Source of the DNA: Basidiobolus meristosporus CBS 931.73
Taxonomy: Eukaryota > Fungi > Basidiobolomycota
NCBI GenBank assembly: GCA_002104905.1
Contig: MCFE01000087.1
Coordinates: 1 to 64,000 of the forward strand
Length of the DNA: 64,000 bases
Direction of reading: 5' to 3'
This document shows, piece by piece, positions 8,317 through 58,515 of this stretch. Under the pieces are notes generated by a model that was given only the letters and a program-made list of their open reading frames with translations, searched no databases and was not told the origin of the DNA. Made by a program: the position numbers and the translations under genes. Position 1 is the first letter of the stretch. Every line of letters begins with the position of its first letter.

Positions 8317-8387
8317 TGCGCCGTCCGGGAATCGAACCCGGGGCTAAAGCTTGGGAAGCTTCAATTCTACCACTGTACTAACGGCGC
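8317..8387 (-). tRNA. tRNA-Gly(CCC) copy 1
   Basis: 71-nt cloverleaf GCGCCGT...ACGGCGC-A, anticodon arm GAAGC-TTCCCAA-GCTTT, T loop TTCGATT, T5 terminator just downstream. Unique upstream flank. Confidence 0.95.
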
Positions 8388-9346: not shown

Positions 9347-12204
9347 ATGGTTGATTCCGAAGACGATATCCCTCTTGGTCGTAGAGCTCAAAGGAAGCTT
9401 CAGGTTTCCTCAGATTACGATTCTGATGACGATGTTCCGCTTCAAAAACGCTCCCAAGGCGAAGCTGCTATAAAACAAGAAGGTACCTATATCCTGAATT
9501 TTCCTTCCCAAATGGTCATTTGCTCTAGGATGCGGGTTTACCACAGTTCAATCGATCTTGATGCTAATTGCTAACGCGCTTCTTTTCCGTAGGGAGAGCT
9601 TCTGACAATAAAGGTCAGAATCTTGCCAATGGCACTAACGGTGTGAAGAGAGGTACAGAGGAGGAACAGGTAATACCTTATGTTTTGCTTTGTGATGACT
9701 TTGGGAGATCCAAATTGGGAAATCCCTTTATTTGTCAACCGATTGCTAAGGATACACCACATCCCACCAATGAAATTTCAAGCAGTATTAATACGAACTC
9801 TACTCTATACACCTGCTAATTTCCATTTCTAACCAAACTAGGCTACGCGTAAAAAAATCAAAACCGAAGATTCTTCTGATGACGAGCCTTTGGTAAGCGC
9901 ACGTCATATTTCCTCGCGGTGGCGCGTTTCGAGGTGTGCTAACCGAGTGACGTTTAGGTCAAACGCGTGTCCAAAGCTAAAAGCAAACCTGTCAAGACGG
10001 AGCCGGGTTCCAACACACCCGTTAGAAAGCGTGCCGCCAAGGTTAAGCAGGAGTCTGATGATGAAGACGTACCTTTGGCTAAGAAGTCTGCCACTAAAAA
10101 ATCCGAGCCTCGTGTAAAGAAAGAATCCACGCCATCCACTCCCACTGCTCGCGGAAGAAAGAAGAATGAAACCACCCCCAGTAAAGATAAGGGCAAGGTT
10201 AAAGAAGAAGAGGAGGAGGAGGTATACAAGTGGTGGGAAGCTGAAAATCAGGATAATACTATCAAATGGACCTCTCTGGAGCACAATGGTGTATTGTTCC
10301 CTCCGGACTATGTCTCACACGGAGTAAAGATGAAGTACGACGGCAAACCTATCGAGCTGTTGCCAGAAGCCGAGGAAGTGGCCAGTTTCTTTGCTACCTT
10401 ACTCGGCTCAGATCATGGCAACAATCCAACATTCCAAAAGAACTTCTTTAACGATTGGACTGAGTTGATGAAGAAGGTTTATGAGGAGAAAAAGCTACCA
10501 CCGCCACCCATCAAGGAGTTCGCCAAGTGCGATTTTACTCCTATGTTTGACCACTTCCAAAGAGAGAAAGAGGCCAAAAAGGCAATGACCAAGGAAGAGA
10601 AGGCAGAAATCAAGGCCCAGAAATTGGTCATTGAAGAGAAATACGGTTATGCAATTCTAGATGGTAGAAGAGAGAAGGTTGGCAACTTTAGAATTGAACC
10701 CCCTGGTCTATTCCGTGGACGTGGTGAGCATCCCAAGACGGGATGTTTGAAGCAGCGTGTGCAACCAGAGCAGGTGACCATCAATATCGGCAAGGATGCC
10801 AAAATCCCCGAAGCACCTCCTGGTCACCAATGGGGCAAGATTATTCACGACAACACGGTTACATGGCTTGCAATGTGGAAAGAGAACGTCAACGACAACA
10901 TCAAGTATGTTTTCTTGGCAGCTGGCAGCTCCCTCAAGGGGCAGAGTGATCTAAAGAAGTTCGAGAAGGCCAGAAACCTCAAGAAACTGGTCGGAAAGAT
11001 CAGACGTGATTACATGGAAGAGCTGAAGCACAAAGTGATGGCCACCAGACAGCGCGCCACTGCATTGTACCTTATTGATCGATTGGCACTCAGAGCTGGT
11101 AACGAGAAGGGTGATGATGAAGCCGATACCGTTGGTTGTTGCTCGCTTCGATATGAGCATATTGAGCTAGTCCCCCCTAATACCGTCGTGTTTGACTTCT
11201 TGGGTAAAGATTCTATCAGATACTACAACGAAGTCAATGTCGACGAACAGGTATTCAAGAACTTGAAATTGTTCAAGAAACCGCCCAAGGGAGAGGGTGA
11301 CGATTTATTCGATCGTCTTACTACTCAGTCACTCAACAAGCATTTATCTTCCCTTATGCCTAGTCTTACTGCTAAGGTATTCCGTACCTACAATGCGTCC
11401 TTCACCTTCCAAGATGAGTTGAAAAAGACCCCTGTCGATGGGACCATTGCCGAAAAGTTGTTAGCTTATAACCGCGCCAATCGACAGGTTGCAGTTCTAT
11501 GTAACCATCAACGGAGTGTCAGTAAGGCTCATGGTGCTCAAATGACTAGAATCCAAGACAAGTTACGAGCCCTCAAGTACCAGCGCCGTCGTCACAAGTA
11601 TCAGCTAGCTGCTATGGACCCTAAGCTGAAGAAAAAGCGGCCCGAGCTTTTCGAACCCGAATCGGACCTTGAGGAGGATTGGATTGAGGAGTATGAAAAA
11701 GATATGTTGGAAAAGGAGCGTGAAAAGATCAAAGCGAAGTTTGAAAAGGATAACCAGGCACTGAAGGACAACAAGGAGAAGCCACTACCACAATCTGAAC
11801 TGAAGGAATTACTCTCCAAGGTTGACGAGAAGGCCAAGGAGCTGAAGCAAGAAAAGAAAACTGGGGAAGTTTACGCTATCAAGAAGAATGCTACGGTTGA
11901 AAGACTTGAGACCGCCATCAGTAAACTTACCGAAAGGATTCTGACGACGAAGACCATGATGGTCGACAAGGATGAGAACAAGACTACTGCTCTTGGTACC
12001 TCGAAAATCAACTACATCGACCCTCGTATTTCTGCTGCTTGGTGCAAGAAGTACGATGTGCCTTTGGAGAAGATTTTCAACAAGAGTTTGAGAGAAAAGT
12101 TCAAGTGGGCCATGGACGTTGATGAGGATTGGGTAAGTCTCCATTGGTACGATGTGTTTGAATCATCCGATCTAACCTATTCTTTGTCATTTTAGGAATT
12201 TTAA
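9347..12204 (+). CDS. TOP1: DNA topoisomerase I (type IB), multi-exon
   Basis: KWTSLEHNG, EPPGLFRGRG, ALRAGNEK, AKVFRTYNAS and catalytic SKINYIDP motifs. Short 5' exons; terminal exon EF-TAA at 12196-12204. Confidence 0.97.
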
Positions 12205-12568
12205 AATGAACTTCTCGATCATCGGCTCACTCCACCCCGACCCTCCCTCAATTTTCCTTCTATTCCTTTATCTTTGACACCAACAGTTTTTAGAAACAGT
12301 GATTTATTCATCTTCAAGATCTCTACACCTCCGTTAAGTGATTCCCATCTTTTTTTTATACATAGTATTTATATTTGTTGTAGAATAAATCTTCACCACC
12401 TCGTCAACAAGACCCTACCTACGTGGAATGTTCGAAATGCGGCACCTAAATGGTAAAGAAATTCCTCGGCTGAGTAGAATACGTGATCCCATACTTCGAT
12501 TCACGGCGGGGGACGAGGCGAATCACAAGATGTCCACTAATTCCGCCGAAATCATGGGTGATCCCACA

Positions 12569-13065
12569 TGTGATGGGATTTCGCATGGAGTATATGTTGG
12601 CCCCATCCATCCCAACCACTCCTTACAACGCATTTTATTCACAATTTATCTAAAAGCACCTGTGTGAGGATGGTTCCGTGTAGGAAGTCGTCGATTAAGC
12701 ACTAGGCCGTATATAAATTGAAGATTCAAGGATCGAGTTGGGTGCGGTACTCTCACAAACTAGGCCTTCGTGTCTGTTGATGGGGAGGAGCGCAATAACT
12801 TGACCTACAACAAATACAATATGACTACAATCAGAGCAAATAGCCAACCAGATGGGATAAAAGAAAGGGATAATGGCAGTAAATCGAAAGAGTGCACGTG
12901 AACCATAAGGCAAGAGTGTATGTGGCTTTAACACTCAACATTGTGAGTAAGTGTGGGTTGTAGGCTATGGTTGCGAGGGTAGGATCATAAGAGTAACCAT
13001 AATATTGGGAAAGAGAAAAGGAAGATGTGCATGGGGTGAATGGGAAAAAATGCCCAAGAATTACA
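12569..13065 (-). mobile_element. LTR-like element, type G (497 bp)
   Basis: TGTGAT...ATTACA termini (consensus TIR TGTGAT/ATCACA). Ends 11 bp upstream of tRNA copy 2. Orientation inferred from the order TATA, AATAAA, TGG-starting flank. Confidence 0.65.
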
Positions 13066-13076
13066 CGAATATAGAG

Positions 13077-13147
13077 GCGCCGTTAGTACAGTGGTAGAAT
13101 TGAAGCTTCCCAAGCTTTAGCCCCGGGTTCGATTCCCGGACGGCGCA
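13077..13147 (+). tRNA. tRNA-Gly(CCC) copy 2
   Basis: Identical 71-nt sequence to copy 1. Confidence 0.95.
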
Positions 13148-13395
13148 TACCTCTGAACCATAATTTTTGAGAAACTCTAGGACCTCATACGGCCAAGATA
13201 AGGCTAGGCGCATGCACCATTAAATCTGTCATCATTTCATACAAGTTAGATCAGACCTCATATGACTAATGGACACGAACTGCCGGAAATCGGAAATCAT
13301 TCAACTAATGATTCACGGACGCATGCACCAACTTCGGCTCTTCGAAAATGATTTTATGCGGTTGATGCATATGATTAAAGAATTAATATTAGCTC

Positions 13396-13519
13396 TAACA
13401 CTCAACATTGTGAGTTTTAGGCTAAGGTTGCGGGGGTAGAGTTACAATAACAAAAATATCGGGAAACAGAAAAGGAAGATGTGCATGGGGTGAATGTGAA
13501 GAAATGCCCAAGAATCACG
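13396..13519 (-). mobile_element. Truncated LTR type G remnant
   Basis: Homologous to the tRNA-proximal end of LTR-G (12928-13065); ends AATCACG 11 bp before tRNA copy 3. Confidence 0.65.
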
Positions 13520-13530
13520 CGAATATAGAG

Positions 13531-13601
13531 GCGCCGTTAGTACAGTGGTAGAATTGAAGCTTCCCAAGCTTTAGCCCCGGGTTCGATTCCCGGACGGCGC
13601 A
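13531..13601 (+). tRNA. tRNA-Gly(CCC) copy 3
   Basis: Identical 71-nt sequence; T5 run downstream. Confidence 0.95.
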
Positions 13602-14661
13602 AAACCCCTTCATTTTTCACATTCTTATTCCTCAATTCTCTGTTACGCATTCCAATTTTGTGAAACTTTAGAGGTTACTGAGAGTGGGATCCTCGGCTTG
13701 AGGTGTCAATAAATCCTAGAAAAGTTATTCATCACATGTATATACCAACACTGTGTATTATATATATGTCTTTCCTGGCATGAGATGGCCATCTCCCTAA
13801 CTTCGATTTAACACCGCTGATCTCAAATCCATTAATTGCCAATATGATAATTGAAAGTTTGTTAATCCTGGTTAACTGTATTTCAACAAATCTAGTTTGC
13901 GTATTCATCCAGGCATCTTCGCACTTGGTTAGAGTTACAGAATTCTTAAGCTAAAGAACGGTTCACCTGAATGTCGAATGAAACGCTTCAGCTATAAACA
14001 CTGGACTCCCTTTGTGCATATATAGGTCTATATTTTCTGCTTACACTGATAGTGATTGTATTCTACATATATGGATCCACTTGCGAATATGAGAAAATAG
14101 GGAACGTTGGTGATTGCGAATTTATTGGTGCTTTTGGTCAAGGATTAAATTACTCAAAACTTTCTAAATCTTCTAAAGCTTGGAATATGCAATGCAGATT
14201 TGGAGTAATTAGAAAAGCATCAAAGTAATATTAGGAGTATCTTGATGAAGGGAAAACGAATGGTACGGCTGCATTGTTGGCATGATGAAGTTGTCTATGT
14301 CTGGAATTCGTCATTGACCAAGATTTGTGCATTTTATTCCACCAATTTTGTCTCAGAATAGGTAACTTGCACTTGACCTTCACTAATTCCAAGAATTAGC
14401 CAATATTTCATAAACGAAGTCTTAAGTAAATAACTCATAGCTTAGCAATAAGCGAAGTAGAATCTTGCGTTACATGAATGGTATAGGTGTAAACTGAATA
14501 TTTACAACAGTAAACTCGCAATGTGTGCCCAATTTTTGCAGTATAAAGGCCACGGTGAAAGTTGTCTGATATATGACAAATTTGGTTGAGTGCATATTTG
14601 TAATCCTTGGTCAGTGATTACCCATACATGTGGATGATTCCACTACAATAATAGTGCAGAT

Positions 14662-14731
14662 TTATCATTGGTAAGGCGGAGAAATTGAAGTTTCCCAAGT
14701 TTAAGGCCACACATGATTGCTGGATGGTAGA
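14662..14731 (+). pseudogene. Heavily decayed tRNA-Gly(CCC) relic
   Basis: AATTGAAGTTTCCCAAGTTT (about 14683-14702) aligns to AATTGAAGCTTCCCAAGCTT. Flanks are collinear with many transitions; acceptor and T arms are destroyed. Confidence 0.55.
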
Positions 14732-15337
14732 AGTTTTGCATTTCCCTATGAAGCATTGTTCCTTACTATGTAAGTGCTTGTTCGATCAAAACCTTGTACA
14801 AGTATATATACTACCTTTACACCCAACAGATCATCAAGTAAGAATAACATAATCTTCTTGCTCCTCAGTCAATCCAGTATCTCCAATACTGCCACAACAG
14901 GCCCAACGTCGCTGTCTGTCCAACATGGAAATGTAATCTAATTGTAGGAAAGAAAGACATGTAGCATGCATGTGAATATAATATAGTGAATTCATTCACT
15001 TTTAGATAGAAGTACATTCTTTAACTCAAGAAGTTTGTAATTGCAAAAAACAATCAAGAGTGAGAGGATCAATGCAGATAATGATAATCATCAGGTTAAC
15101 AGTTCTCATATTGGCAGCAATCCAGTTTGAGAGGTATGGTGTAAGATAAAATATCAGGGACATGACTATTGTATTTCCAAAAATATTACTGTATAAGGAG
15201 CATAATTTCAGATGGGTAAAGATTCTTCTAGTGTTGAAACATGTAGTGAATACGCATTCTAAAAATGAAGCCATGGGTATACAAATCATTACATCCTTGG
15301 AAAATTACCACAGTATTGGTTCAAAAAAGAAATGATT

Positions 15338-15408
15338 TGCGCCGTCCGGGAATCGAACCCGGGGCTAAAGCTTGGGAAGCTTCAATTCTACCACTGTACT
15401 AACGGCGC
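15338..15408 (-). tRNA. tRNA-Gly(CCC) copy 4
   Basis: Identical 71-nt sequence; T6 terminator. Confidence 0.95.
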
Positions 15409-16454
15409 CTCTGTATTGATTTTTAGTTCTCTGAAATAAACAATTAATATATGGCCAGGTTTGCGCGATGTTCCTTTCAGTGGAGATCATGAATATCACC
15501 AGTCCTATCCTATTGATAAAGATGATTTGAGGTTTGCTTTTCATTGCTAGCTGATTTTGGCTACTTCTACCTAGTAGGCTTTGTTCAATAATACTTGACC
15601 TCAGTTAAATTCCATATCACAGCAGCATTGATGTAAAATTTTCGAGATTTTTAAACGTATGAGCCAGCAAACATCCTAATATTGTACAAAATACTGTATC
15701 AACGCACAAACCAGACTTCTTGTAATCACACGTATTGTTTAATAAAGCTTCATATTTACTGCATGGACAACAGATAGTCATGATCAGAGTATGTACTCAT
15801 TAGAAAGGTTGACAGAGAGAAGGAATGCATTGACGTATTTCTATTCACTAGATGAGGCGAATTACAAACGAGGTTTGTTGAAATCCTGGTGAACATGAAT
15901 GTCGAGTAGCTTTACCAGCTGATGATACTGATATATTTGTATTCAGGAGAACAAAAGGCATTTATATATAGCTATTACTGATAAATCGACGTTCAAATTT
16001 ACTGCTATTTAAAGTTGGGTATTCAATCGTTTGGACGGTGTTTAGAATATGCGAGGAAAATTTGGCAAAGTTAGTATGAAGATGATATAATGAGATATAT
16101 TGGACAAAACAGACCCACTTCTTTTTTCTTGTTGTCAATCTTCCCCTTACCAACCTGGTATGCTAGATCAAGTTGTTACTCGACCTCGATATTTCACACT
16201 AGATTTCCGGAAACCCTAACGAGCATGCTATATGGGACCATTATCCATCCAAATAGGAAATCATGCTAAACCAAAAGGATTGACAAAAGTAGGCTGACAA
16301 ATAGTTGGAAATTGTCTAAAAACATGAAGACTTACTGATCCTGCAACATGATTCCTTCTATTGAAAATTCAGAAGCTCCTCTAAAAAATCAGAGTAATAT
16401 CGGAGAAACTGCATCGAGCTGAGGTTTGCCATCGAGGAAAGAAAAGGAAGACGT

Positions 16455-16525
16455 TGCGCCGTCCGGGAATCGAACCCGGGGCTAAAGCTTGGGAAGCTTC
16501 AATTCTACCACTGTACTAACGGCGC
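16455..16525 (-). tRNA. tRNA-Gly(CCC) copy 5
   Basis: Identical 71-nt sequence. Confidence 0.95.
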
Positions 16526-16535
16526 CTCTATATTT

Positions 16536-16856
16536 TGTTATAGAGTAAGGAGTCAGTCGATGTCAAGTGACATCAACGCGTACAAAGACGACTTAGCAGC
16601 CAGGGAAAAGCAAAACAAGACAAATCACCAGACTCACAATAAGGTATAAATACCAATCAAACAATCAAATAAAGGGAGAAGTTTGGTTAGAAGCAGGAAG
16701 AGCGGTAGAAACGAATATTATTTTGAATATATTTCTACTAGTCACCATCCTAAACTCTGAAGAGATATTCTTACACTACTCCATCGAATCTACGAGATAA
16801 CATACACGTTATCTAATTCCGTACTCTTTAAAGGCATTACTCTTCAGGTACGTAAC
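16536..16856 (+). mobile_element. LTR type A (about 320 bp)
   Basis: Starts TGTTATAGAGTAAGG 10 bp upstream of tRNA copy 5; collinear with 40155-40476. Confidence 0.85.
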
Positions 16857-17601
16857 GAATCGATTAACGACCACGATAGACCTTAACCAAAATATGATGA
16901 TTTCAAAACCGAATTTTACAGTGCATTAGGATGTAGCGCCTATATCTTTCAGTTTATGTAAAAGATAGTAGTTCTCACTATACGTAGTATAAATTGGTGC
17001 TCTGAGTGTGGCTCATAAGTAGCTGCAATAAGCAAGGAGCTACACCATTGCTATCTCTGTGTGAAGTTTTGTAGTAGCTTAGATACATAATTCTGGCATT
17101 TTTACACATGTTATAAACTATTTTGAATGGCAAGTTCTCTTCTGCATTAGTTGAAGGTTTAACGATATCCCAATACGGTGTAACAATGGTTGGAGCATGT
17201 TTTAACTGACTTGTAATCCACTTCATATTCACACTGTGGAAATCTAGCTGAGAACAAATCAATAAACCTGCTGGCCATTCATTGGTCGAGCTAAGGGCTA
17301 TGGAAGTTGTGGAGTAGATCATTGTTGATGGCTGATCATAGCCCCCAGAGTACATTGGTGTTACTAAAAGGAGATTTCCAATTTCCAAATAATGGCCGCT
17401 TAGTACCAGAACCCTCTATCACCAGTTTCAAATAGACAGCGTGAGCTAAGACTCATGAACCCAGGGTTTATAAATAGGATTCGGATTAATGTCAAGAAAC
17501 ACACAAAGATTCATAGTGCAAAGAAATATATGTATAACGATGAAAAAATTGACAAAAAACAACACAACAGGGTGTTGACTGGCTGTGGTAGCTTTGTATA
17601 A

Positions 17602-44409: not shown

Positions 44410-45346
44410 GTGCAGTTGAAACTTCTTGTGATCTTCCTTTTGTATTAGCACTTTGGTTCCTACTTCTGGTTATTGGTCATCTACGTTTTTGTCATATCTT
44501 AATTTCATTTGTTGACCTTGGTCTTTATGCCGTTTTAAAAACCTACTCCCGCTTGTGACCTAACTTCCATTTCTCGTATCCTCCATTCTACTTTATCATC
44601 ATCGTCTTCAGGATTCCACAGATTTGGTTGTGTTGTGGCACCTGGCATCTTTGGCTCTTGTCTTTATACCACATAGAATGGTGAATACGCAACAAGTCAC
44701 ATGGGCTCGTATTCTGCATGCAAAGAGTACCTGCTGAACAAAATCATTTCACTTGTGGTGTATACCTTGAACATAGGTTGCTAGCATTCGGTAAAGCAGC
44801 CCGTTAAAACGTTCATTCACCCCATTTTTTCTAGGATGAATAGCTGAAGTCTTAAATGTTTGATTCCTTGTAGTTTAACGTAGCTTCCCATTACCCCTTC
44901 AATGAAGTTTTGCCAGCACTGGATGGGTCCATTCGTTATAAGTAAAAAAATACCGTTCTCAATGTGTCAGATCGTACATACAAGTGGCGAGATGCATAGA
45001 ACGTTAATCTACTGAGACAGACTAAAAATAGCTTTACAAGATGGGTCATTCCCGAAAAAAGGGGTTGATACTGTAAAGACAAAGATTCTTCCTGAGAAAA
45101 ATCAGTTGAAGAAGGGGAGAATGTTGTAATAGTTTGAAAGCTGTCCTGAACGAACTGAAGATCTGGGCATATACAGAGGCGTCAGCACCAAATAACACCT
45201 AAGTATATGCAAATAGATGGCCAGATATGAAACAAAACTGTTTGCATGTATTCGGAAAATGTGTTAAATAGCTGATCGCAGGCCAAAATAAAGGCAGACT
45301 TGGTTACACCAAACAAAGGAACAGGAATAACCCGGATCGCATAGCA
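44410..45346 (+). mobile_element. 3' end of gypsy element type E: integrase (core inverted), PPT, 3' LTR 45122-45346
   Basis: rve motifs on minus 44410-44915; HWMGPF tail on plus from 44916; PPT GAAGAAGGGGAGAA; LTR TGTTG...ATAGCA. Confidence 0.75.
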
Positions 45347-46273
45347 TTTTCATCTCTCTTCTGTTTTGGACACTCGTAATTTGGTCGTATCTTTCTGCAA
45401 TCATGTAGGTCTCCTTAAATGAGCTAGGATTTTGAAGCTCTACCTCTCTTCTAGTTGCCTTCATAAGTCCACGTGTGTACCGATCAAGTATCTCATCTTC
45501 AGCAATTCCCTCAATATCCAATAGAATACTCTTGAATTGGTTAGCGAAATTATTAATTGTTTCCTTCTGAACTAGCCGTACAAGTTTGTCTCTGGCACGC
45601 TTAGTTGCTGTTACGAGCTTGAATTCGGTCCTCAATTTTTGTTTGAACCAATTCCACTGTTCAACTTCAACTTCATAACCTTCTTGGACTCTCTTCAAGT
45701 GAGACCTCCATGATAACAACGCTTGTCCCCTGAACAGACTTGATGCGTAATCCACCATTTGTGACTTACTAACGTTTGTAAATTTCAGGTGCTTTTCAAC
45801 TTGGAAAATCCAAGAATCCACATTTGATTTTCCTTCAAACGTGTCAGGCTTTACTAACTTTGCGTGATCGGACCCCATACTTCCATATGCCTTCCAGATA
45901 TCTTCTGTTGTAGGCAAGTTCTCTTGCGCACCATATTGCGCCTTTAGCCACTGGTTTCCTTCATTTAATTCTTGCTATTGCTCGCGTAGCAATGCATTGA
46001 TGTCTTTTCCAGAGCTACATCCTTTGGTACTCTTGCTATTGGGAGAACCGCCTTTTGTGTTGCTGCTATCCAAGTGTTATGAACTCCGGGTTGTTCCTAT
46101 TCCTTTGTTTGATGTAATCAAGTCTGCCTTTATTTGGCCTGCGATCAACTATTTAACACATTGTTTCATATCTGGCCGTCTATTTGCATATACTTGAGTG
46201 TTATTTGGTGCTGGCGCCTCTGTATATGCCTAGACCTTTAGTTCGCTCAGGTCAGGTTTCAAGCTATTATTAC
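45347..46273 (-). mobile_element. 5' end of gypsy element type E: LTR 46075-about 46273, PBS-like TGGATAGCAGC, gag fragment
   Basis: gag KLVKPDTFEGKSNVDSWIF, homologous to elements B and C; LTR is the reverse complement of 45122-45346. Confidence 0.8.
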
Positions 46274-46827: not shown

Positions 46828-47136
46828 TGTCATGCTCATTGAAGAAAATCTTAGTTAAGCAGTGTATCTTTTGGGATTCTGGATAGGGTAGAGTTGATCC
46901 AGGTTGCAAGTAAGAAGATACTTTATTTGTGTACAAACCTGTCTGCAATTGTTATTCATAGTGTGCCTTTTATACTGTGTGTGCTAATTAGGTTTCAGTG
47001 ATAAACTAGTGATAAATTGATGCTAGATAGGGTTTTGGTCAGAGTAACTCTATTTGATTGCCTTATATCCATACAGATGGTTGTCTTTTGCAGGGGGCCT
47101 ACCACTTATCCTAGTGGTATATTTTACCCTGTAACA
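46828..47136. mobile_element. Solo LTR type D (longer variant)
   Basis: TGTCAT...TGTAACA; shares the GAGTTGATCCAGG...GATACTTTATT core with 46280-46499. Confidence 0.7.
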
Positions 47137-47139
47137 AGA

Positions 47140-50100
47140 TGTTATGATATTCAGGTCTGGTTCTCCCACTTTGCTGGTGTAACAAGACCTGTCTTTATTT
47201 TTACCACAGGATCTGCTTTTAACACAATTCCCAATTGCTTGCATAGACTATTGTCTCAAGTTTGCCCAACAGTGAGCATATAATGAAGCATTATCACATG
47301 GTGACATAACTATATATGTTGTGATCATCTGAATGTTCTGGTTGGGTTTCAGACTGATAACATTTTCCCCTTCTTCAGTTGATTCTTCTCCTAAAGAATC
47401 TTCAACTTTAAAATACCAAATTTTCTTTTCAGGAAATGGTCCCCCTTGAAGGGCTACTTGGTGGACCAATGTTATCTGTATTTGCTCATCAAGGTCTACT
47501 AGCTGATATGTTGAAAACAGCATAACTCTTCTAATTGTGAATGGTCCCATCCAGTATGGTTGAAACTTCTTGTGGTCTTCCTTACGCATTAAGACTCTTG
47601 TTCCTATCTCAAATTCTTGACTGCTTGCATTCTTGTCATTGTTGTAAAATTTTGTAATTCCTCCTAAATACTCACCTAACTTAGTCACTTAGAGCATTAC
47701 CTTCAAATCCTAGAGAATACTGACCAAATTCCTTGTTGGGATTTACTTCAAATATTTTCACCAAAATATCAGGTACCCAGAATATGAGAATTAGAAAAGT
47801 TGTCCAAACAGCCCCAAACTTTGCACAGATGTTCTTGAGACCTTCCTAACCCTATTTTACATGTTTGTTATGCCAAGACCATGTAAAAGTATTAATACTA
47901 CTTTTACATTCAATAAATCATCAAGTGAAAACCACATAATCTACTTGTTCTCCCAATCACTTCCAATATCTCCAAGACTCTTACAACAGTCATAACATAA
48001 GATCATTTGCTGGCCTTGGTTTTCAAGTTGCTTCAGCACTTCTTCCCTCCTATGATCTAGACTTTCCAATTCTCTGATCTTTCATTCTGCTTCATCATCT
48101 TCATCATCAAGGTCCCAAAGATCTGGATGCAATGTGTCACCAGGTATCATGGGTTCCCTCCCATAGACAAGATAAAAGGGCAAGTATCCTGTAGCTATGC
48201 AAGACTGTATTTGACATGCAAATAGTGCTTGCCGTACAAAATCATCCCATTTATGTTGTGCCCCCTGAACATAAATTGTCAACATTTGGCTAAAGAGTCC
48301 ATTGAAGTGTTCATTAACCCCATTTGTTCTGGGGTGAAAGGCAGATGTTTTTAAATGTTTGATCCCCTGTAATTCTATGTAATTCTTCATGATTCCTTCA
48401 ATGAAGTTTTGTCCTCTATCTGTGAGAATTTCCTCAGTGCATCCAAACTGTAAAGTATTATCTTATACAGAAAAATTGCTACTTCTTTTGCGGTAGCTTT
48501 TCTTATTGATTGGGCAATTGGCCACTTTGTTGTGTGGTCAATTGCCATTAATATCCCCTTGTTACCTCTCCTAGTGTTTGTAAGTCTTCCAATGAAGTCT
48601 AAACTCCAGCTACTAAATGCTGGGACTTGGGGTAACAAATGTAGTGATGCAGCCTGCTGCTTCCTGCTTTTTATTAACTGACAGTTAGGGCAGAATTGTA
48701 TGGCCAGTGCAATATTTTCTGCCATATTTGGCCACTGGTTAGCATACACAGACAATACAGAATTTCTTGGTCTTGATATTTTCTGCACAATACTTCTTCA
48801 TTAACTTGGAACTTATCAAGCTCTTATAATACTAACTCATTGACTTCTATAGTTGTTCCCTCAGGGAAGGTCTGGTTGCAACAGTACTCCACCTACTGCC
48901 CAAGATAAGGCATTTGTTGTCAAATAAAAGATTCTTGTGAAATCAGTACTTTTCAATACTGGTATGTTCAATAAAGCTTGCTTCAACCCTTGGGATGCTA
49001 CTTTACAGTTTGCTTCTGGAATTATTCTTGCCACTACATCATCACTGAATGTAGGTGTACTCCATGAGACATAAGTTTTCTTTTTAGCTAAGACAGTGTT
49101 TTATGCTGCTAATTTGACATCTTGGCTCTTTGTTGGTTGGATTAATAACTTGAGTGTCTTTACCAATACTTCAGAGATGTAATTATCACTTGATCCAATG
49201 TCTAAAATAACTTTCACTGGTTGACTACTAATTTCCACCAGCCACTGAATTACTGGCTTTGTTGGTTCTTCTATTTGCCAATTAAACTCTTCTACCATGT
49301 GTAAGATATGTTGTTCTTTTATTGCATTCAACATTTCTGCAGAGTCTTCTACTTCCACTTTGAACAGGTTATCCTTCTTACACTTAGAACATTCATAAAA
49401 TTGATGGCCTTCTTTTTTGCAATTGGAACACAGATTGTGTTTCATGCAATATTCTTTAGTTTTTTTCTTATTTTGATCCAATGTTTTGGCAGATTCTTGT
49501 CCTTCTTTTCTACCTGCTTAGATATTGCCAAACATAATCTGTTTATATCTTTCTGCCATCATATGTGCTTCTCTAAATGTTTGTGGGTCATGAAACTCCA
49601 CTTCTTTTCTTGTTGATTTTTTTAAACCACAAACATAACAATCAAGTATCTCATCCTTAGAGATACTGTCAATATCCAACAGCAGATTTTTGAAGTGGCT
49701 AGTATAACTACTAACTGTTCCTTTTTGGACTAACTTAGCAAGTTTATATCTGGCTTGCTTTGTAGCTGTTATTGGTTTAAACTCTGTTACTGATTCTTGT
49801 TTGAATTCCCTCCATATCTCAATTTCATCTTCATGACCTTCATTAGACCTTCTTAAATACAATCTCCACCACAATAATGCTCTTCGGATCAGACTTGAAG
49901 TGTATTCAACTTTCTGAGACTGACCAACATTTGTGAACTTCATATACTTCTCAACTTGAAATATCCAAGTGTCCACATTTGATTTTCCTTCATAAGTTTC
50001 AGGCTTTGTCAACTTTACCCAATTAGATCCTGGACTTCCATATGCCTTCAAAATATCTTCTTTTGTAAGCAAATCTTCTTGTGCACTATATTGTGCCTTC

Positions 50101-50473
50101 AGCCACTGGTTCTCTTCCTTTAATTCTTGTAATTGCTCTCTTAGCAATGCATTTAAGTCTTCACCAGGGATACTACCTTCAGTACTTTTACTAGTACTCA
50201 TCTTCTCTTCTTTTTCCAGAGGATCTACAATGAATTGTTGCTACCAAATGCTATGATATTCAGGTCCGGTTCTCCCACTTTGCTGGTGTAACAAGGTCTG
50301 TTTTTATTTTTAGCGCTGGATCTGCTTTTAACACAATTCCCAACTGCTTGCATAGACTATTGTCTCAAGTTTGCCCAACAGTGAGCATATATTGAAACAT
50401 CATCACACGGTGATATAACTACATATGTTGTGATCATCTGAATGTTCTGTTTGGGTTTCAGACTATTGTAACA
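47140..50473 (-). mobile_element. Degenerate Ty3/gypsy element B (LTRs 50249-50473 and 47140-47362; gag, Zn knuckle, PR, RH remnant, IN; RT deleted)
   Basis: Paired LTRs of about 225 bp; PBS TGGTAGCAACAA (iMet-like); PPT before the 3' LTR; CSNCKKEGHQFYEC; VILDIGSSDNYI; WSLDFIG; WMGPF. U3 end lies 11 bp from tRNA copy 10. Confidence 0.9.
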
Positions 50474-50484
50474 AAAATGTAGAG

Positions 50485-50555
50485 GCGCCGTTAGTACAGT
50501 GGTAGAATTGAAGCTTCCCAAGCTTTAGCCCCGGGTTTGATTCCCGGACGGCGCA
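50485..50555 (+). tRNA. tRNA-Gly(CCC) copy 10, T-loop variant (TTTGA), possibly impaired
   Basis: One C>T at the invariant B-box C56. Confidence 0.85.
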
Positions 50556-51121
50556 TCACCTTTTTCATTTAATCAATGGCATTCCTCGAACCGTCACACT
50601 ACCTCCCAAATTTTGGAGCAACTTTAGAATTTCCAGTAGAAGGGAATCCATGCACTTGTACCATTTCAACGCCGGTTTTCCGTACCATCAAAGTGAAGAG
50701 ATTTAAATTTATGAATCATCAATCTTCCGAAAACACACTGGACCAATTGAAATAATAGGTCGAAATGTGTATGTTTGTAATAGAGTAGTAAGTTAAAGAG
50801 CGGAGTGGCCTTGGTATTCCGGTAAACTTAAGGATCAACTGAGCACAAGTTCCATCAGAGCCCTAAAACTAGGAAATATTGTGGAAACCCACAATAATAG
50901 CAGAAATCATTCCAAATCTTGAAGGAGCTATGTAATTGACAAGAAAAATGAAGTTGGTGTATTTTGAGCACAAACGGGTCAATGCTGAGATCACCCAACT
51001 AGGCTTTGATCCACTGGTGATTTTACAGTTTCTCCAAATGTTGTGTTTTGATGGATATGATATACTCTTGGTTGTACGGTATTCATTTTCGGAGTGCCCG
51101 TAAACGGGAGCAAAAGATTGT

Positions 51122-51192
51122 TGCGCCGTCCGGGAATCAAACCCAGGGCTAAAGCTTGGGAAGCTTCAATTCTACCACTGTACTAACGGCGC
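51122..51192 (-). tRNA. tRNA-Gly(CCC) copy 11, two C>T changes, possible pseudogene
   Basis: Sense AGCCCTGGGTTTGATT versus consensus AGCCCCGGGTTCGATT. Confidence 0.8.
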
Positions 51193-51203
51193 CTCTGTAT
51201 TTG

Positions 51204-54200
51204 TGTTATGAAATCCAGGCCAGTTCCCCTCCTTCTGTTTGGTGTAACAAGGTCTGTCCTTTATTTTAGCGTAGGATCTACTTTTTATACATTTCTCAAT
51301 CATTTGCATACAACTTGTCTTACTTTAGCCCATCAGTCTTTGATCATCTTTGATGATTTTTGGTGTTGACGCATCTCTATATGCAACAACTTGCTGCCTG
51401 TTCTGGTTGGGATTCAGACTTTCATAACATTTTCCCCTTCTTCAATTGATTCTTCTCCTGAAGAATCCTCGTCTTTATGGTACCAAACCTTCTTTTTGGG
51501 GAATGGTCCGCCTTGCAATGCTATTTTTAGTCTGTCTTGGTGGACTAGCGTTTTCTGAACTTGGCCACTCATATCTACGAGCTGATATGTTGAGAATGGC
51601 ATTATTCTACTTACAACAAATGGGCCCATCTAGTACGGTTGAAACTTCTTGTGGTCCTCCTTTTGTATTAGAACCTTTGTTCCAACTTCCAGCTCTTGGT
51701 CACCTACATTTTTATCGTATCGCAATTTCATTTGTTGACCTTGACTTTCAAGTCTTTTTATCACTTCCTCTTGCTTGTGGCCTAACGCCTCCAATTCTTG
51801 TATTCTCCATTCTGCTTTATTGTATTCATTGTTGAGATTCCAGAGGTTTGGCCGTACTGTGTCACCTGGGATTTTTGGCTCTTGTCCATATACTAAGTAG
51901 AAGGGTGTATACCCTGTAGGTACATGGCATCATATTTGACACGCAAAAAGTGCCTGTTGCACGGATTCATCCTGTTTGTGGCATGCACCTTGGACATAGG
52001 TTGTTAGCATTCTACAAAACAACCCATTAAAACGTTCATTCACCCCATTAGTTCTAGGGTGAAATGCCAATGTTTTTAAGTGTTTAATTCCTTGCATCCT
52101 AACATAGCTTCCCATTACGCCTTCAATAAAGTTTTGCCCTCTTTTGGTAAGTATTTCTTCTGGGCAACCAAACTGTAACAGTATTTCTTCATACAGGAAC
52201 GTAGCTACCTCTTTTGCTGTAGCTCTTCTTATTGCTTTAGCAATTGGCCACTTTGTGGTGTGGTTTATAGCAGTTAGTATCCATTTGTTACCCTTTTTGT
52301 TTCTGGCAACCTTCCAATGAAGTTTAAACTCCACCAACTAAATGCTGGGACTTGTGGTAATGGGTGAAGTTGTGCCTCTTGTTTTCTTCCCGGCGTGGCT
52401 AACTGACAGTTGGGGCAGAACCAAATAACTTTTGCAATATCTTGAGTCATATTTGGCCACCAGGCTTGAGGCTTCAGTTAGTTTAAGACTCCTTGCACTC
52501 CTAAATGGCCATATGCCTGATGATATTTGCAGATTAGATCTGCGCGCAATATATGTGGGCAAAACAGGATTTCTGGGTCTTGTATTTTTCTGTACAAAAC
52601 TTCTTCATTTATGCAAAACTTGTCTGCTTCCTGTCTTACTAATTCTTTAACTTCTGCAGGGATCTCTTCTGGGAAGGTTTGCTCCTGTAGGTATTGAGGT
52701 ATTAGAGTTGGCCAATCCAACACATCTATCATGAGGATTGTGCTTTCTATTATCTGTTCTTGTGTCTCCTCTTCCATCCTGGAGAGTGCATCGGCTACTT
52801 TATTTGAGCTACCTTTTATGTAGGTGATCTCAAAATTGAATTGTTGCAAGTATTCTATCCAACGCAGCATTCTTCTTGATAAGGTTTTTTGTGTATTAAC
52901 AAATCTTAGACTTGCATGATATGTCTGGATAATACACTTTTTTCCTTCTTGGTAGCATCGCCACACTTTCAAACAAACAATTATTGCCAATAACTCTTTT
53001 TCGTGTGTTGGATAATTATGTTCTGCTGCTGAGAGTTTTCTACTTTTGAACGCAATTGGATGCTCCTGTTTGTCCTGATATTGTGACAGTACTCCCCCTA
53101 CGGCCCATAGTGAAGCATCGGTTGTTAAATAGAAGGTTTTTGAATAATCCGGGCTTTTCAACACTGGGGCGTTTACTAATGCAACCTTCAACTGTTGGAA
53201 TGCAACTTCACATATTTTTGACCAAGTGCACATCCTTTCTTGCTTTAGTAAGTCCATCAGTGGCGCTGCTATCTGTGCAAAGCCTGCTATAAACTTTTGG
53301 TAATATGATGCTAACCCTAGAAACAATTGTAGCTTGGTTATCGAGTTTGGGTATGGCCACTCTTCTATTATCTTTACTTACTTATTGTCAACTTTCAGGC
53401 CTTCTGTGGTAATCACATGTCCTAAATATTCAATTTCTTTTGTATTGAACTGACATTTTTCCTTGTTTGCTACTGATTTTTCTCTTTGCAAAATATCAAA
53501 GACAATTCACAGATGGTCTTGATGTTCTGCTAGTGTTTTGCTATATATTAATATATCATCTAGGTATACTAATATAAATTGATCTAGATATTGATGAAAA
53601 ATGCTATTCATCAATGTCATAAAGGTGGCTAGTGCGTTGGTGAGTCCAAAACTCATTACCACAAACTTGTAATGGCTGTAGCATGTGCAAAATGCTGTTT
53701 TCTCAATATCACCTTCTTGAATTCAGATTTGGTAGTAGCCACCTTTCAGATCTATCTTTGAAAACACCCTTGCACCATTCAGGTTGTCAAACAGTTTGTC
53801 AATTTGGGGGAGTGGGCACTTGTTTTTGATTGTTGCTGAATTTAGGGCTTGATAGTCCACACACAAACAAAGAGACCCCTCCTTCTTCTTAACAAACAAT
53901 ACCGGTGCTTCAAACAGCAATTTACTTGGTCTTATATAACCTTTCTCTAACAATTCAGCTAATTGTTTTTTTAATTCTTGTAGCCCCAATGGACTCATCC
54001 AGTAAGGCTGTTTTGACACCAGTGAGCTGTTTTCTAGATAAATCTTGTGATCCACACTTCTTTTTGGTGGTGAGCCTTTGAGTACTCTGAACACATCTTG
54101 GTACTCATCCAAGATACTTTGGATATCCTGCATGTTGTTGGTTTACTTGGTGTCTTCATCTAGAATGCTGTATATAAATTCAACATTGCTTTTGTCTACT

Positions 54201-54901
54201 TTCCTTGCTGCTTTAGAAAGTTGTGACTTTCTAATTACAAGTACCTCCTCTTCTTTTAGCAGTTCTGTGTTTGGTTTACAGATTACCTGCCACCTCCCTT
54301 CCTTATATACTGCCACTTCTTGCATTTGCCAATTGATGACAGGATTTTGTTTGTACAATTTTAGAATTTTAGGTATTTTTCAACCTGAAAATCCAAGAAT
54401 CCACATTTGACTTCCCATCAAATGTATCAGGCTTAGCTAACTTTACATGACCGGATTCCAAACTTCCATATGCCTTCAGAATATCTTCTTTAGTAGGCAA
54501 CTCTTCCTGTGCACTATACTGTGCTTTTAGCCACTGGTTCTCTTCTTTCAATTCTTGTAATTGCTCTTGCAGCAATGCATTAATGTCTTCACCAGGGCTG
54601 CTTTCTTTAGTACTCTTGCTAGTACTCATTTTCTTGTAGTTTGGAGGATTATTTGTTGTTTTGCTGCTACCAAATGTTATGAAATGCAGGCCAGTTCCTG
54701 TCCTTCTGTTTGGTGTAACAAGGTCTGTCCTTTATTTTAGCGTAGGATCTACTTTTTATACATTTCTGGATCATTTGCACACAACTTGTCTTACTTTAGC
54801 CCATCAGTCTTTGATCATCTTTGATGATTTTTGGTGTTGACGCATCTCTATATGCAACAACTTGCTGCCTGATTCTGGTTGCAATTCAGACTTTCATAAC
54901 A
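51204..54901 (-). mobile_element. Degenerate Ty3/gypsy element C (LTRs 54675-54901 and 51204-51429; gag N-term, RT, RNase H, IN; gag core and PR deleted)
   Basis: Paired LTRs of 226/227 bp; PBS TGGTAGCAGCAA (54661-54672); PPT GAAGAAGGGGAAA; RT YLDD region; RH TDASLWAVGGVL; stops and frameshifts. Confidence 0.92.
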
Positions 54902-54907
54902 AAAATA

Positions 54908-55234
54908 TGTTACATACTTAAAGAGTAATGTCCTTTAGAGAGTACAAAAAGGGATAATGTGTATGTTATCTTGTAGATTTGATGGGGTAGTGTAAGAATA
55001 TCTCTTTAAAAGGTTAGGGGGGTGACTTTGTAGAAATATATTCAAGCTAATATTTGTTCCTACTACACTCTTCTGCCTATAACCAAAACTCCCTTTTTAT
55101 TTAGTTGTTTGTTTGGTATTTATACCTTATTGTGAGTCTGGTGATTTGTCTTTGATTTGCTTTTCCCTGGCTACTAAGTCATCTTTGTATGCGTTGATAT
55201 CACTTAACATCGAGTGACTCTTTACTCTGTAACA
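54908..55234 (-). mobile_element. Solo LTR type A with 5-bp TSD AAATA
   Basis: AAATA at 54903-54907 and 55235-55239; ends 10 bp upstream of tRNA copy 12. Confidence 0.9.
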
Positions 55235-55244
55235 AAATACAGAG

Positions 55245-55315
55245 GCGCCGTTAGTACAGTGGTAGAATTGAAGCTTCCCAAGCTTTAGCCCCGGGTTCGA
55301 TTCCCGGACGGCGCA
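55245..55315 (+). tRNA. tRNA-Gly(CCC) copy 12
   Basis: Identical consensus 71-nt sequence. Confidence 0.95.
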
Positions 55316-55881
55316 ACGATCTTTTGCTCCCGTTTACGGGCACTCCAAATGTTGTGTTTTGATGGATATGATATACTCTTGGTTGTACGGTATTCATTTT
55401 CGGAGAAACTGTAAAATCACCAGTGGATCAAAGCCTAGTTGGGTGATCTCAGCATTGACCCGTTCGTGCTCAAAATACACCAACTTCATTTTTCTTGTCG
55501 ATCACATAGCTCCTTCAAGATTCGGAATGATTTCTGCTATTATTGTGGGTTTCCGCAATATTTCCTAGTTTTAGGGCTCTGATGGAACTTGTGCTCAGTT
55601 GATCCTTAAGTTTACCGGAATACCAAGGCCACTCCGCTCTTTAACCCACTACTCTATTACAAACATACACATTTCGACCTATTATTTCAATTGGTCCAGT
55701 GTGTTTTCGGAAGATTGATGATTCATAAATTTAAATCTCTTCACTTTGATAGTACGGAAAACCGGCATTGAAATGGTACAAGTGCATGGATTCCCTTCTA
55801 CTGGAAATTCTGAAGTTGCTCCAAAATTTGGGAGGTAGTGTGACGGTTTGAGGAATGCCATTGATTAAATGAAAAAGGTGA

Positions 55882-55952
55882 TGCGCCGTCCGGGAATCGA
55901 ACCCGGGGCTAAAGCTTGGGAAGCTTCAATTCTACCACTGTACTAACGGCGC
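55882..55952 (-). tRNA. tRNA-Gly(CCC) copy 13
   Basis: Identical consensus 71-nt sequence. Confidence 0.95.
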
Positions 55953-55963
55953 CTCTGTATTTG

Positions 55964-58356
55964 TGTTGCAAAATTGTTTATTGACGTCAAGTTAGGTGTT
56001 CCAAAATTTTCAAGAGTCAAGAGGGTTGTTCTGGGTTTCTGGGCATCTGTCCTAACGGTACCTTGAGTTGGTTAATAAATACTGTGTTACTTGGCTGAGG
56101 CTTGATCCTAATCTGGCTTGCATGCTAAGCCCTTAACGGGCGATATTGTAACATACCCCCAATCTTGAGAGGATTCTACTTCGTAAGAATCATCCGCAGG
56201 ATACCAGAACTTGGAGGGCAACGGCTGGTTCTGGTCTAAGCACGCTATCTTGAGTTGTTCCTGGTGAACAAGGTCTTTCTTAACTGCTCCTTGTGGAGAG
56301 GCCAGCTGAAAAGTATGAAATGGTCGAGCCTCTTTGATGATGTAAGGTCCTGTCCAAAGTGGGTCGAATTTCTTGCGCTTGTTGTTCTTTAGTAGTACCC
56401 ATATTCCTGCTTTGAGTTGTGCATTGTTGACTTTTTCTTCTTGTCGTTTCTTCATGTTTGTTGCTTGATTTACAAGGTTTCTTGTGGCGTCGAACCTTGC
56501 GTGTCCCAATGCATCCAGTTCGCGTCTTCGAAATTCCTCGTAATCTTCGTTATTGTCTAGCTTCCATAGGTTGGGTGGTAATAAGTCTCCCGGGATCTTT
56601 GGCTCTACTCCGTAGACTAAGTAGAAGGGCGACTTGCCTGTGGCATAGTGATTTCGAATTCTGCAGGCAAATAGAGCTTGGTGGATGAACTCGTCCCATT
56701 TGTGCGTGGCGCCTTGCACGTATGTGGTTGGTATTTTTCCAAATAAGCCGTTAAAACGCTCGTTAGCTCCATTGGTTCTAGGGTGGTATGCGGATGTCTT
56801 GAGATGCTTAACTTTCATTTTTTCCAGATAGGAGTTCAGTACTCTGTCCATGAAATTTGTCCCTCGGTCTGTCAATATTTCTACGGGGCACCCAAATTGC
56901 ATGAAGATTTCGGTGTAAATAAAGTTGGCTACGGTTGTTGCATAGGCATTGGGGAGAGCCTTTGCAATACACCATTTGGTGGTGTGTTCGATTGCCGTAA
57001 GGATCCATCTGTTTCCTCTTTGTGTTGTGGGTAATTCACCAATAAAATCGAGGCTCCAACGCGTAAAAGCTGGGACGGGGTTGAGAGGATGTAACGGTGT
57101 TACAACTTTGTTCAACGGTTTGGCGAGTTGGCATTGCTGACATGTTTGAATCGCTTGTGCAATGTCTTTTCGCATTTGTGGCCACCAAGCTCGTCGTTTG
57201 ATAATGTCATAAGTTCCCTGTGAGCCTAGGTGGCCAAATCCGTTGTGCATCTTATTGATAGTATCGGCTCGAAATACATGCGGAAGGTATGGTACGGGGC
57301 CGATGTTTTCTAGATGTCGATACAGTACTTCATCTTCTCCAAACGAGAACTTGTGGGCTTTGCTTTTTAGGATATCTTGTATCTCCGTAGGTAGGTCAGC
57401 TGGGATGGTACCGGACGACAGGCATTCTGGTAGGTAACTGGGCCAATCGTGCCGTTGGTCAAGGGTGTTAATAGGTTGCAGGTTGTGGTGTCGTGATAAG
57501 GCATCTGCTGTTGTCATGGCTTCAATGAGGGTTTTGGGGTCCCGGTATTCTACTTCGTGTCGCGTCTGAGGTCGGAGTCCTTGGAGGTAGTATTCTTTCT
57601 GCTCGGCGTCTGGCATGTCGGGAATTTCGAGCATTAGCAGACTGAATTGTTGGTTGTATTCTGTTACTGATTTTGTTTGGTTTAATTTGTACAACTTGTC
57701 ACGGGCGTTCTGTACGGAGTTGACAGGTATGAATTGTTTACGTAAGGCCGTGGTGAATTCGTCCCAGGTATTGATACTTGGGAGTATTCTACGACTAATT
57801 CCTTGGTTATGGAGTTTCCACCATAGTGTTGCTTCTTTTCGAAAAAAGGAGGTTGCGTACTGAATTTTGAATAAGTCAGGGTCATTTGAAAAGGCCAGAT
57901 ATTGCTCCATCTCAAAGATCCAAGTTTCGAGTGTCATGGCTTGCTTTGTTCCATCAAAAGTGTTTGGTTTTGCTAATTTCAAGGTGTTTCCTACAACTGG
58001 TCTGTTCACTGGTTGTGTACTAGATGTAGATAGTCGGAATAATTGTTTTTCCATCTGATCAATGTATGCTTCCATATCTTCGACCGATTCAAATTTGGGG
58101 CGGGACATGTCTGTTGTGCTAATTTCAAGGCTTGGGAGGTGTCAAGAAGGTAATGTTTGTCGCTGCTACCAGTATGTTACGGAATTGTTTATTGAGGTCA
58201 AGTCAGGTGTTCCGGGATTCTCAAGAGTCAAGAGGGTTGTTCTGGGCCCCTGTCCTAACGGTACCTTGAGTTGGTTAATAAATACTGTGTTACTTGGCTG
58301 AGGCTTGATCCTAATCTGGCTTGCATGCTAAGCCCTTAATGGGCGATATTGTAACA
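55964..58356 (-). mobile_element. Short LTR retrotransposon F (LTRs 58175-58356 and 55964-56153), non-autonomous gag-IN type
   Basis: TG...CA LTRs; PBS TGGTAGCAGCG at 58161-58171; G-rich PPT GATTGGGGGTA next to the 3' LTR; 11 bp from tRNA copy 13. Confidence 0.92.
56108..58108 (-). CDS. Intact 666-aa Gag-integrase fusion ORF
   Basis: Gag (KLAKPNTFDG, QTKSVTEYNQQF, YYLQGLRP), then HHCC (HNGFGH...CQQC), WSLDFIG / ILTDRGTNF / NGANERFNG (D,D35E) and WTGPY. No PR, RT or RH motifs. Confidence 0.9.
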   Translation of the reverse strand: MSRPKFESVEDMEAYIDQMEKQLFRLSTSSTQPVNRPVVGNTLKLAKPNTFDGTKQAMTLETWIFEMEQYLAFSNDPDLFKIQYATSFFRKEATLWWKLHNQGISRRILPSINTWDEFTTALRKQFIPVNSVQNARDKLYKLNQTKSVTEYNQQFSLLMLEIPDMPDAEQKEYYLQGLRPQTRHEVEYRDPKTLIEAMTTADALSRHHNLQPINTLDQRHDWPSYLPECLSSGTIPADLPTEIQDILKSKAHKFSFGEDEVLYRHLENIGPVPYLPHVFRADTINKMHNGFGHLGSQGTYDIIKRRAWWPQMRKDIAQAIQTCQQCQLAKPLNKVVTPLHPLNPVPAFTRWSLDFIGELPTTQRGNRWILTAIEHTTKWCIAKALPNAYATTVANFIYTEIFMQFGCPVEILTDRGTNFMDRVLNSYLEKMKVKHLKTSAYHPRTNGANERFNGLFGKIPTTYVQGATHKWDEFIHQALFACRIRNHYATGKSPFYLVYGVEPKIPGDLLPPNLWKLDNNEDYEEFRRRELDALGHARFDATRNLVNQATNMKKRQEEKVNNAQLKAGIWVLLKNNKRKKFDPLWTGPYIIKEARPFHTFQLASPQGAVKKDLVHQEQLKIACLDQNQPLPSKFWYPADDSYEVESSQDWGYVTISPVKGLACKPD

Positions 58357-58358
58357 AT

Positions 58359-58515
58359 TGCCACCGAGTAAAGAGTCACTCGATGTTAAGTGACATCAAG
58401 ACGACTCAGTAGCCTGGGAAAAGTAAAAGAGACAAATCACCAGACTCACAATAAGGTGTAAATACCAATCAAATAAAGTTCAAGTTTGGTTAGAAGTAGG
58501 AAGAGCGGTAGAAAC
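58359..58515 (+). mobile_element. Truncated LTR type A
   Basis: TGCCACCGAGTAAAGAGTCACTCGATGTTAAGTGAC matches the LTR-A start; 2 bp from LTR-F. Confidence 0.75.

Follow-up and report, generated by a model that had tools for sequence, protein, structure and literature searches.

The closest described counterparts of the element studied here, element F of the fungus Basidiobolus meristosporus CBS 931.73, are the Ty3 retrotransposon of Saccharomyces cerevisiae (Metaviridae), non-autonomous plant elements, and host genes domesticated from metaviral proteins. Domesticated genes of this kind, with Arc, PEG10 and PNMA among them, have lost their long terminal repeats (LTRs), are conserved across species and evolve under purifying selection. 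Retroelement integrases have also given rise to host genes, such as GIN1 and NYNRIN. The TR-GAG and LARD elements of plants keep LTRs, primer binding site (PBS) and polypurine tract (PPT) and have lost the replication enzymes, and non-autonomous families with partial domain sets, integrase remnants included, are reported from sugar beet (PMC13570524). The Ty3 integrase (IN) binds Brf1 and tRNA-gene DNA through a vestigial chromodomain (PMC8632968). Element F is an LTR element with a fused Gag-IN open reading frame (ORF), located at positions 55964-58356 (minus strand) of the 64-kb stretch of contig MCFE01000087.1 analysed here and called the window; a second contig of the same assembly (GCA_002104905.1), MCFE01000759.1 (17 kb), was also examined. 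With moderate confidence, we consider element F to be a single defective copy, produced by an in-frame internal deletion from a Ty3/mdg4-type lineage, with its ORF under relaxed constraint.

Element F is 2393 bp long and is bounded by two LTRs (LTR-F) in direct orientation, both with the TGTT...AACA ends that conform to the TG...CA pattern of Ty3/mdg4 LTRs. The 5′ LTR (58175..58356, minus strand; 182 nt, ends TGTTACA...GTAACA) forms a direct-repeat pair with the 3′ LTR (55964..56153, minus strand; 190 nt), which adjoins a tRNA gene, and the two differ by 12 mismatches (10 transitions) and one 8-bp indel. The PBS (TGGTAGCAGCGA; TGGTAGCAGCG(A); 58160..58171, minus strand) lies 3 nt downstream of the 5′ LTR. 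We count it as real because the same 10-mer, TGGTAGCAGC, stands at the equivalent place in the neighbouring element C (54662-54672, 2 nt inside the 5′ LTR). Its primer is presumably initiator tRNA-Met; the PBS starts with TGGTAGC a few nucleotides after the LTR, as that of Ty3 does. The PPT-like tract, AGATTGGGGGTA (56154..56165, minus strand), adjoins the 3′ LTR and lies within the ORF. Every cis element (LTRs, PBS and PPT) is therefore retained. The single-frame ORF of 666 codons (56108..58108, minus strand) takes up the whole internal region and has its stop codon within the 3′ LTR. A previous interpretation made from the letters alone, here called the sequence-only reading, had described these LTRs, PBS, PPT and uninterrupted ORF, and all are indeed present, with the reservation that the PPT is short and amounts to just a G5 run.

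Pfam matches on the 666-aa protein were confined to Ty3_capsid (aa 44-202), Retrotrans_gag (84-180), Integrase_H2C2 (276-331) and rve (349-443), and no match to protease (PR), reverse transcriptase (RT) or RNase H (RH) was found in the ORF, as the sequence-only reading had noted. The Gag part (aa 1-201; 57506..58108, minus strand) comprises an N-terminal helix and a two-lobed, Ty3/Arc-like capsid (CA) but has no nucleocapsid (NC) zinc knuckle. An AlphaFold (AF2) model of aa 1-240, built on a 12-sequence alignment, gave a two-lobed helical capsid with a mean predicted local distance difference test score (pLDDT) of 82.6. Foldseek matched this model to dArc, PNMA2, PEG10 and the Ty3 capsid 6r24, with 152 of 155 residues covered, and the Gag part is thus predicted to fold as a complete two-lobed CA, like the capsid domains of the Arc, PNMA and PEG10 genes. 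The claim that the element supplies its own capsid is accordingly at best partly right, since the modelled CA is complete but the NC knuckle is missing.

The integrase part consists of the HHCC zinc-binding domain (aa 276-331; 57116..57283, minus strand; Pfam PF17921, E = 3.7e-18), the catalytic core (aa 349-510; 56579..57064, minus strand; Pfam rve) and a C-terminal SH3-like domain with GPY/F (aa 560-636; 56201..56431, minus strand; the P0002 and P0242 alignments reach aa 636). The zinc ligands H288, H293, C323 and C326, the catalytic residues D354, D414 and E450, and G587-P588-Y589 are all kept, bearing out in both sequence and alignment the intact HHCC, D,D35E and GPY/F-like motifs of the sequence-only reading. 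Among 72 integrase positions conserved at ≥80%, 70 are retained and the two exceptions are conservative, and searches of the PDB matched PFV integrase and the Ty3 intasome 7q5b. A Ty3-type capsid is thus combined with an integrase of Ty3/mdg4 type. Because IN is all that is left of the PR-RT-RH-IN order of Ty3/mdg4 elements, however, element F is a deletion derivative rather than a complete member of the group, and having no PR, RT or RH it is necessarily non-autonomous.

Beyond the integrase C-terminal domain, the protein continues for ~30 residues as a short acidic tail with no chromodomain. Its relatives end ~15-40 residues after a ...FWY motif, likewise without a chromodomain, and, as their C-terminal tails (..GGENV..) reveal, ORFs of the lineage commonly extend across the PPT into the LTR. 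Since the relatives share both features, the missing chromodomain and the ORF running into the LTR are lineage traits; the absence of a chromodomain had been correctly observed, but it is not a loss. The C-terminal '..SYEVES..' was considered as a remnant chromodomain and dropped, as relatives carry the same short acidic tail. Judged from these comparisons and from the insertion site described below, the source appears to be a new, previously undescribed, low-copy, chromodomain-less, tRNA-targeting, Ty3-like lineage.

The deletion junction was placed by BLASTP against P0002, P0087 and P0242 together with pairwise and multiple alignments of the gag and RH ends. Full-length relatives (e.g. P0242, 1452 aa) encode gag-CCHC-PR-RT-RH-IN in one ORF of ~1350-1510 aa. 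In element F the gag consensus ...YRxPxTLxEAIxIA stops at A201; what follows is the terminal RNase H motif (v)ADALSR and, after it, the DWP linker with the integrase. The junction therefore lies at codons A201/D202 (57503..57508, minus strand), ~15-20 residues upstream of the position first proposed (aa 215-220). It falls within the last capsid helix, and ADALSR, the final conserved RNase H motif, is retained after it. The segment aa 202-275 (57284..57505, minus strand), made up of the last 5 RNase H residues and the linker/integrase N-terminal extension with DWP, aligns with the RNase H-to-HHCC interval of full-length relatives. Relative to P0242, ~745 residues are missing: approximately the last ten residues of the final capsid helix, the spacer, NC, PR, RT and nearly all of RH.

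These comparisons are most simply accounted for by one ~2.2-kb deletion, which would have removed the end of the capsid helix, the spacer, the NC knuckle, PR, RT and most of RNase H and, by chance in frame, would have brought A201 directly before the RNase H tail ADALSR and a complete integrase. Chance alone would preserve the frame in a third of deletions. Two origins of the deletion seem most likely: a template switch while a full-length parent was being reverse-transcribed, or illegitimate recombination once the element had inserted. With a template switch, the parent's own proteins would have integrated the deleted cDNA, so that parasitism in trans need not be invoked. The resulting copy would be incapable of its own transposition and would now be slowly decaying.

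The second contig allowed this copy to be compared with a close homologue. It encodes the exact protein of TPS (trehalose-phosphate synthase/phosphatase), the flanking TPS exon of the window is 100% identical to K493DRAFT_211498 of B. meristosporus CBS 931.73, and host genes are 99.75% identical between the contigs. Element F is present there in the same flanks (8695-11087), with the same LTR-LTR differences and an identical 5′ LTR (8695-8876); 12 substitutions, but no indel, separate the two element copies. This indicates a single insertion event represented on two contigs, which would be alleles or products of a recent duplication. Between the two Gag-IN ORFs we counted 8 non-synonymous and 4 synonymous changes (dS 0.0092, dN 0.0051, dN/dS 0.56), as against 1 and 7 in the long exons of TPS and AIP3, where dS was similar. 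The ORF is thus significantly looser than the flanking host exons (Fisher p = 0.028), and its dN/dS is indistinguishable from 1 (binomial p = 0.25; 12 changes, little power) and does not show the value well below 1 expected of a domesticated gene. This dN/dS is a two-copy comparison, the nearest relative being ~50% identical with synonymous sites saturated. Furthermore, two residues of the window copy depart from what is usual at conserved positions: C229, at a site with Y or F in 68 of 116 homologues, and P460, at a catalytic-core site with L or I in 113 of 116. The second copy keeps Y and L, respectively. Because of the contrast with host exons and these radical changes at conserved sites, the ORF appears to have been under relaxed, near-neutral constraint since the contigs split. 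The targeting integrase of the sequence-only reading is supported in that nearly all conserved residues are kept.

Several observations weigh against relaxed constraint. As a point estimate, dN/dS falls below 1, and the ORF of the second contig (8943-10943) is also open. Taken as a clock, the LTR divergence of 6.6% (12/182; 0.033 per site per lineage) predicts ~66 substitutions in the ORF, among which it would have escaped every stop codon with a probability of ~0.05 (0.01-0.30 over the Poisson range). The 70 of 72 conserved integrase positions are a sign of possible past constraint, and the deletion ends both lie at domain ends, with the hybrid helix predicted to remain helical: in the AF2 model the last capsid helix (194-208) spans the junction unbroken before disorder sets in. 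Together, the open ORF, kept residues, domain-end breakpoints and dN/dS below 1 hint at past constraint. These hints are weakened, however, because the clock may be inflated. The final 75 nt of the LTR contain the indel and 11 of the 12 mismatches, whereas its first 107 nt differ at a single position; such clustering has a probability of ~4e-4 under uniformity (binomial, by hand), or ~0.01 if runs are treated as single events. This suggests a conversion-like event rather than age, and on the 5′ part of the LTR alone the insertion would be young and the open frame unremarkable.

The clustered differences lie at the U5/tRNA-proximal end (55964-56040 vs 58175-58250) and are mostly transition runs (CCC/TTT, CC/TT). 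The runs make the tRNA-adjacent LTR more AT-rich, and an AA/GG run is also seen in the flank paralogues. Conversion, a deamination-like process or selection on the region upstream of the tRNA are possible sources. A tRNA-proximity effect was considered as the cause and dropped, since elements B and C of the same island (see below) are without such clustering.

The main alternative to a single defective copy is a working non-autonomous family, which we regard as possible but unlikely. Here the Gag-IN RNA would be packaged and reverse-transcribed by a full-length partner; CA would bring the integrase of element F into the particles of the partner, in the way that Gag does for Gag-Pol, the protease supplied by the partner would free the integrase at the retained RH/IN boundary, and this integrase would insert the cDNA at tRNA genes. 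The anatomy of element F agrees with such a cycle: all cis elements are present, with the PBS common to element C, the predicted CA is complete and two-lobed, the integrase has all catalytic and zinc-binding residues, the RH tail and whole pre-HHCC linker are kept, and the ORF is open in both copies. Defective elements also occupy tRNA sites throughout the island. Against it stand the missing NC, which is the RNA-packaging part of Gag, a dN/dS not significantly below 1, the L460P change in the catalytic core of the window copy, and the outcome of the searches for a family and a partner.

Sensitive blastn found no further LTR-F insertion and no solo LTR-F in the 64 kb and 17 kb, which offer 13 tRNA-Gly target genes, so that the proposed check for more copies with the same junction returned only the one insertion event. 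Nor was an autonomous partner sharing LTR-F, the other expectation, found in the window or the protein databases; among the other elements of the window, the closest integrase shares 47-54% identity with that of element F and the closest gag 33-36%. The exact 666-aa protein has no record in the assembly index. A word-based protein search gave best identities of 47-50%, in the integrase part only and with no protein of gag plus IN alone, and HMMER against 1.84 billion representatives gave 49-50% at best, to the integrase part or to full-length polyproteins only. Short two-stretch HMMER matches, taken up as possible Gag-IN proteins, proved to be RH-IN or IN-only. No protein of >50% identity and no Gag-IN architecture was thus found in 5.8 billion clusters or 1.84 billion representatives, no homologue of >50% identity in annotated proteomes, B. 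ranarum proteins included, and metagenome scans with a junction-spanning peptide and a 33-nt LTR word were empty. Literature searches returned no described class of gag-integrase non-autonomous elements. Because transposable element (TE) ORFs are unannotated in this genome and the copy searches covered 81 kb of it, the absence of family, partner and Gag-IN proteins is weak evidence. The non-autonomous parasite of the sequence-only reading therefore holds as far as non-autonomy goes, whereas the parasite is not supported by these searches, with one insertion event, no partner and no Gag-IN relatives found. The closest integrase relatives (41-47%; P0002, P0017) include Rotaria sp. (rotifer) labels beside Mucoromycota and an aphelid; the Rotaria-labelled matches could reflect contamination or horizontal spread of this Ty3-like lineage.

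The plant elements differ from element F. TR-GAG codes for gag only, whereas element F has a full integrase, and the partial-pol plant families are decayed and multi-copy, whereas element F has an intact CA-IN ORF from one insertion event. A functional minimal CA-IN module that docks its own integrase in a partner particle, or a variant acting as a capsid-poisoning regulator, is improbable; if true, it would be a previously undescribed LTR-element architecture.

Domestication as a host or regulatory gene, for instance one encoding a capsid-binding dominant-negative factor that restrains related elements in the manner of Ty1 p22 or Fv1, is more doubtful still. The ORF has stayed open despite the 6.6% LTR divergence, conserved residues are kept and the ORF is retained on both homologous contigs, as such a gene would require. 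Domesticated metaviral genes, however, have shed their LTRs and are conserved across species under purifying selection, whereas element F still has its LTRs, PBS and PPT, its dN/dS of 0.56 is not significantly below 1 and significantly looser than in the adjacent host genes, and conserved sites are radically altered in the window copy. Moreover, the deposited annotation has no gene model at this position, and no orthologue was detectable at >50% identity in annotated proteomes including B. ranarum. The suggestion of a domesticated Gag-IN is thus not borne out. An assembly artefact, in which reads from a full-length element were mis-joined, has nothing specific in its favour beyond the proneness of repeats to error in draft assemblies and is very hard to credit, given the same 2393-bp structure on two independently assembled contigs that differ by 12 substitutions and no indel.

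Like Ty3, which it also resembles in its capsid fold (6r24) and in an integrase that aligns to 7q5b, element F has inserted within ~11 nt of a tRNA gene, on the upstream side, and is flanked by a target-site duplication (TSD) of ~5 bp. Unlike Ty3, it has no PR, RT, RH, NC or C-terminal chromodomain, its capsid is only ~20-25% identical, and its host is a zoopagomycete-grade fungus. The target is a tRNA-Gly(CCC) gene (55882..55952, minus strand; ARAGORN), and element F ends 11 nt upstream of its mature 5′ end. The TSD copies read CAAAT downstream (55959..55963, minus strand) and CAAT upstream (58357..58360, minus strand), both in element sense, and are imperfect by one A by comparison with a paralogous empty site. 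That site (55105..55244, plus strand) is the upstream flank of the tRNA-Gly gene at 55245-55315, with inverted repeats I1-I3, and the outer flank of element F (58358-58476) is an inverted copy of it. Element C, which adjoins the tRNA at 51122-51192, inserted at the same base as element F, after ...CTCTGTATTTG, in the same orientation and 11 nt upstream of a tRNA-Gly gene (compared stretches 51189-51210 and 55953-55970). Because an element of a different family has an identical offset and orientation, targeting is Ty3-like and precise, within the narrow window upstream of tRNA genes that characterizes RNA polymerase III targeting. The Ty3-type contact with TFIIIB, via the C-terminal domain and vestigial chromodomain, has no counterpart here, as neither element F nor its relatives have a chromodomain, and targeting must presumably use other contacts.

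The window has 13 tRNA-Gly(CCC) genes between 8317 and 55952 (ARAGORN), often as convergent pairs with spacers of ~490-570 nt. In the pair at 55235-55962, the two 81-nt arms match at every position. The second contig's pair unit is closer to the window unit at 50466-51208 (97.4%) than to its syntenic unit, which suggests ectopic conversion among pair units.

Other differences between the contigs were also noted. The TPS-AIP3 genes and element F are duplicated at 99.5-99.75% identity (second contig 2176-11831 vs window 64000-55220), and the second contig has an extra 875 bp between TPS and element F (7655-8530), at window position 58521. At 11815-16962 it carries a 5.1-kb LTR element that fills the tRNA-Gly site left empty in the window (55105-55244), so that the insertion state differs between the homologous contigs. 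This element, from a distant family, has LTRs of at least 300 nt that are 98% identical and gag and RT-RH-IN with frameshifts. Elsewhere in the window, the best database match of the TOP1 ORF (9967-12195) is a B. ranarum protein (91%), with no B. meristosporus model at 100% among the results even though the contig belongs to that species; perhaps the database lacks this gene model, or its length fell outside the range searched.

Beside element F, the island at 40-55 kb contains related Ty3-like elements in which the internal deletion differs from one to the next. Element B (47134-50464; LTRs of 222 nt, 92% identical) combines gag-NC with a fragment of RNase H and IN and lacks RT; element C (51204-54871; LTRs of 197 nt, 97% identical) has PR-RT-RH-IN and almost no gag; and element D (~44410-46031) has gag beside an integrase core fragment. 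Since each is differently deleted, central deletions that leave gag and IN are frequent here. Elements B, C and D resemble element F in being tRNA-targeted, Ty3-like and internally deleted, element C sharing its PBS and offset, but they belong to a different family (integrase 47-54%, gag 33-36%), have other deletion ends and have broken ORFs. Indeed, all island TE ORFs other than that of element F are broken, the longest being 282 aa, which confirms that element F has the only undamaged one. An intact ORF within a decayed TE island is, by itself, no evidence of function. If the Gag-IN were functional and propagating, it would represent a new route to non-autonomy, in which an element keeps its capsid and targeting integrase and borrows the polymerase, and it would offer a natural system in which to study how integrase reaches particles. 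Taken together, the locus is a record of a new tRNA-targeting Ty3-like lineage from an early-diverging fungus, with a precisely mapped in-frame deletion, and the empty paralogous site and the two slightly diverged copies permit a direct test of selection.

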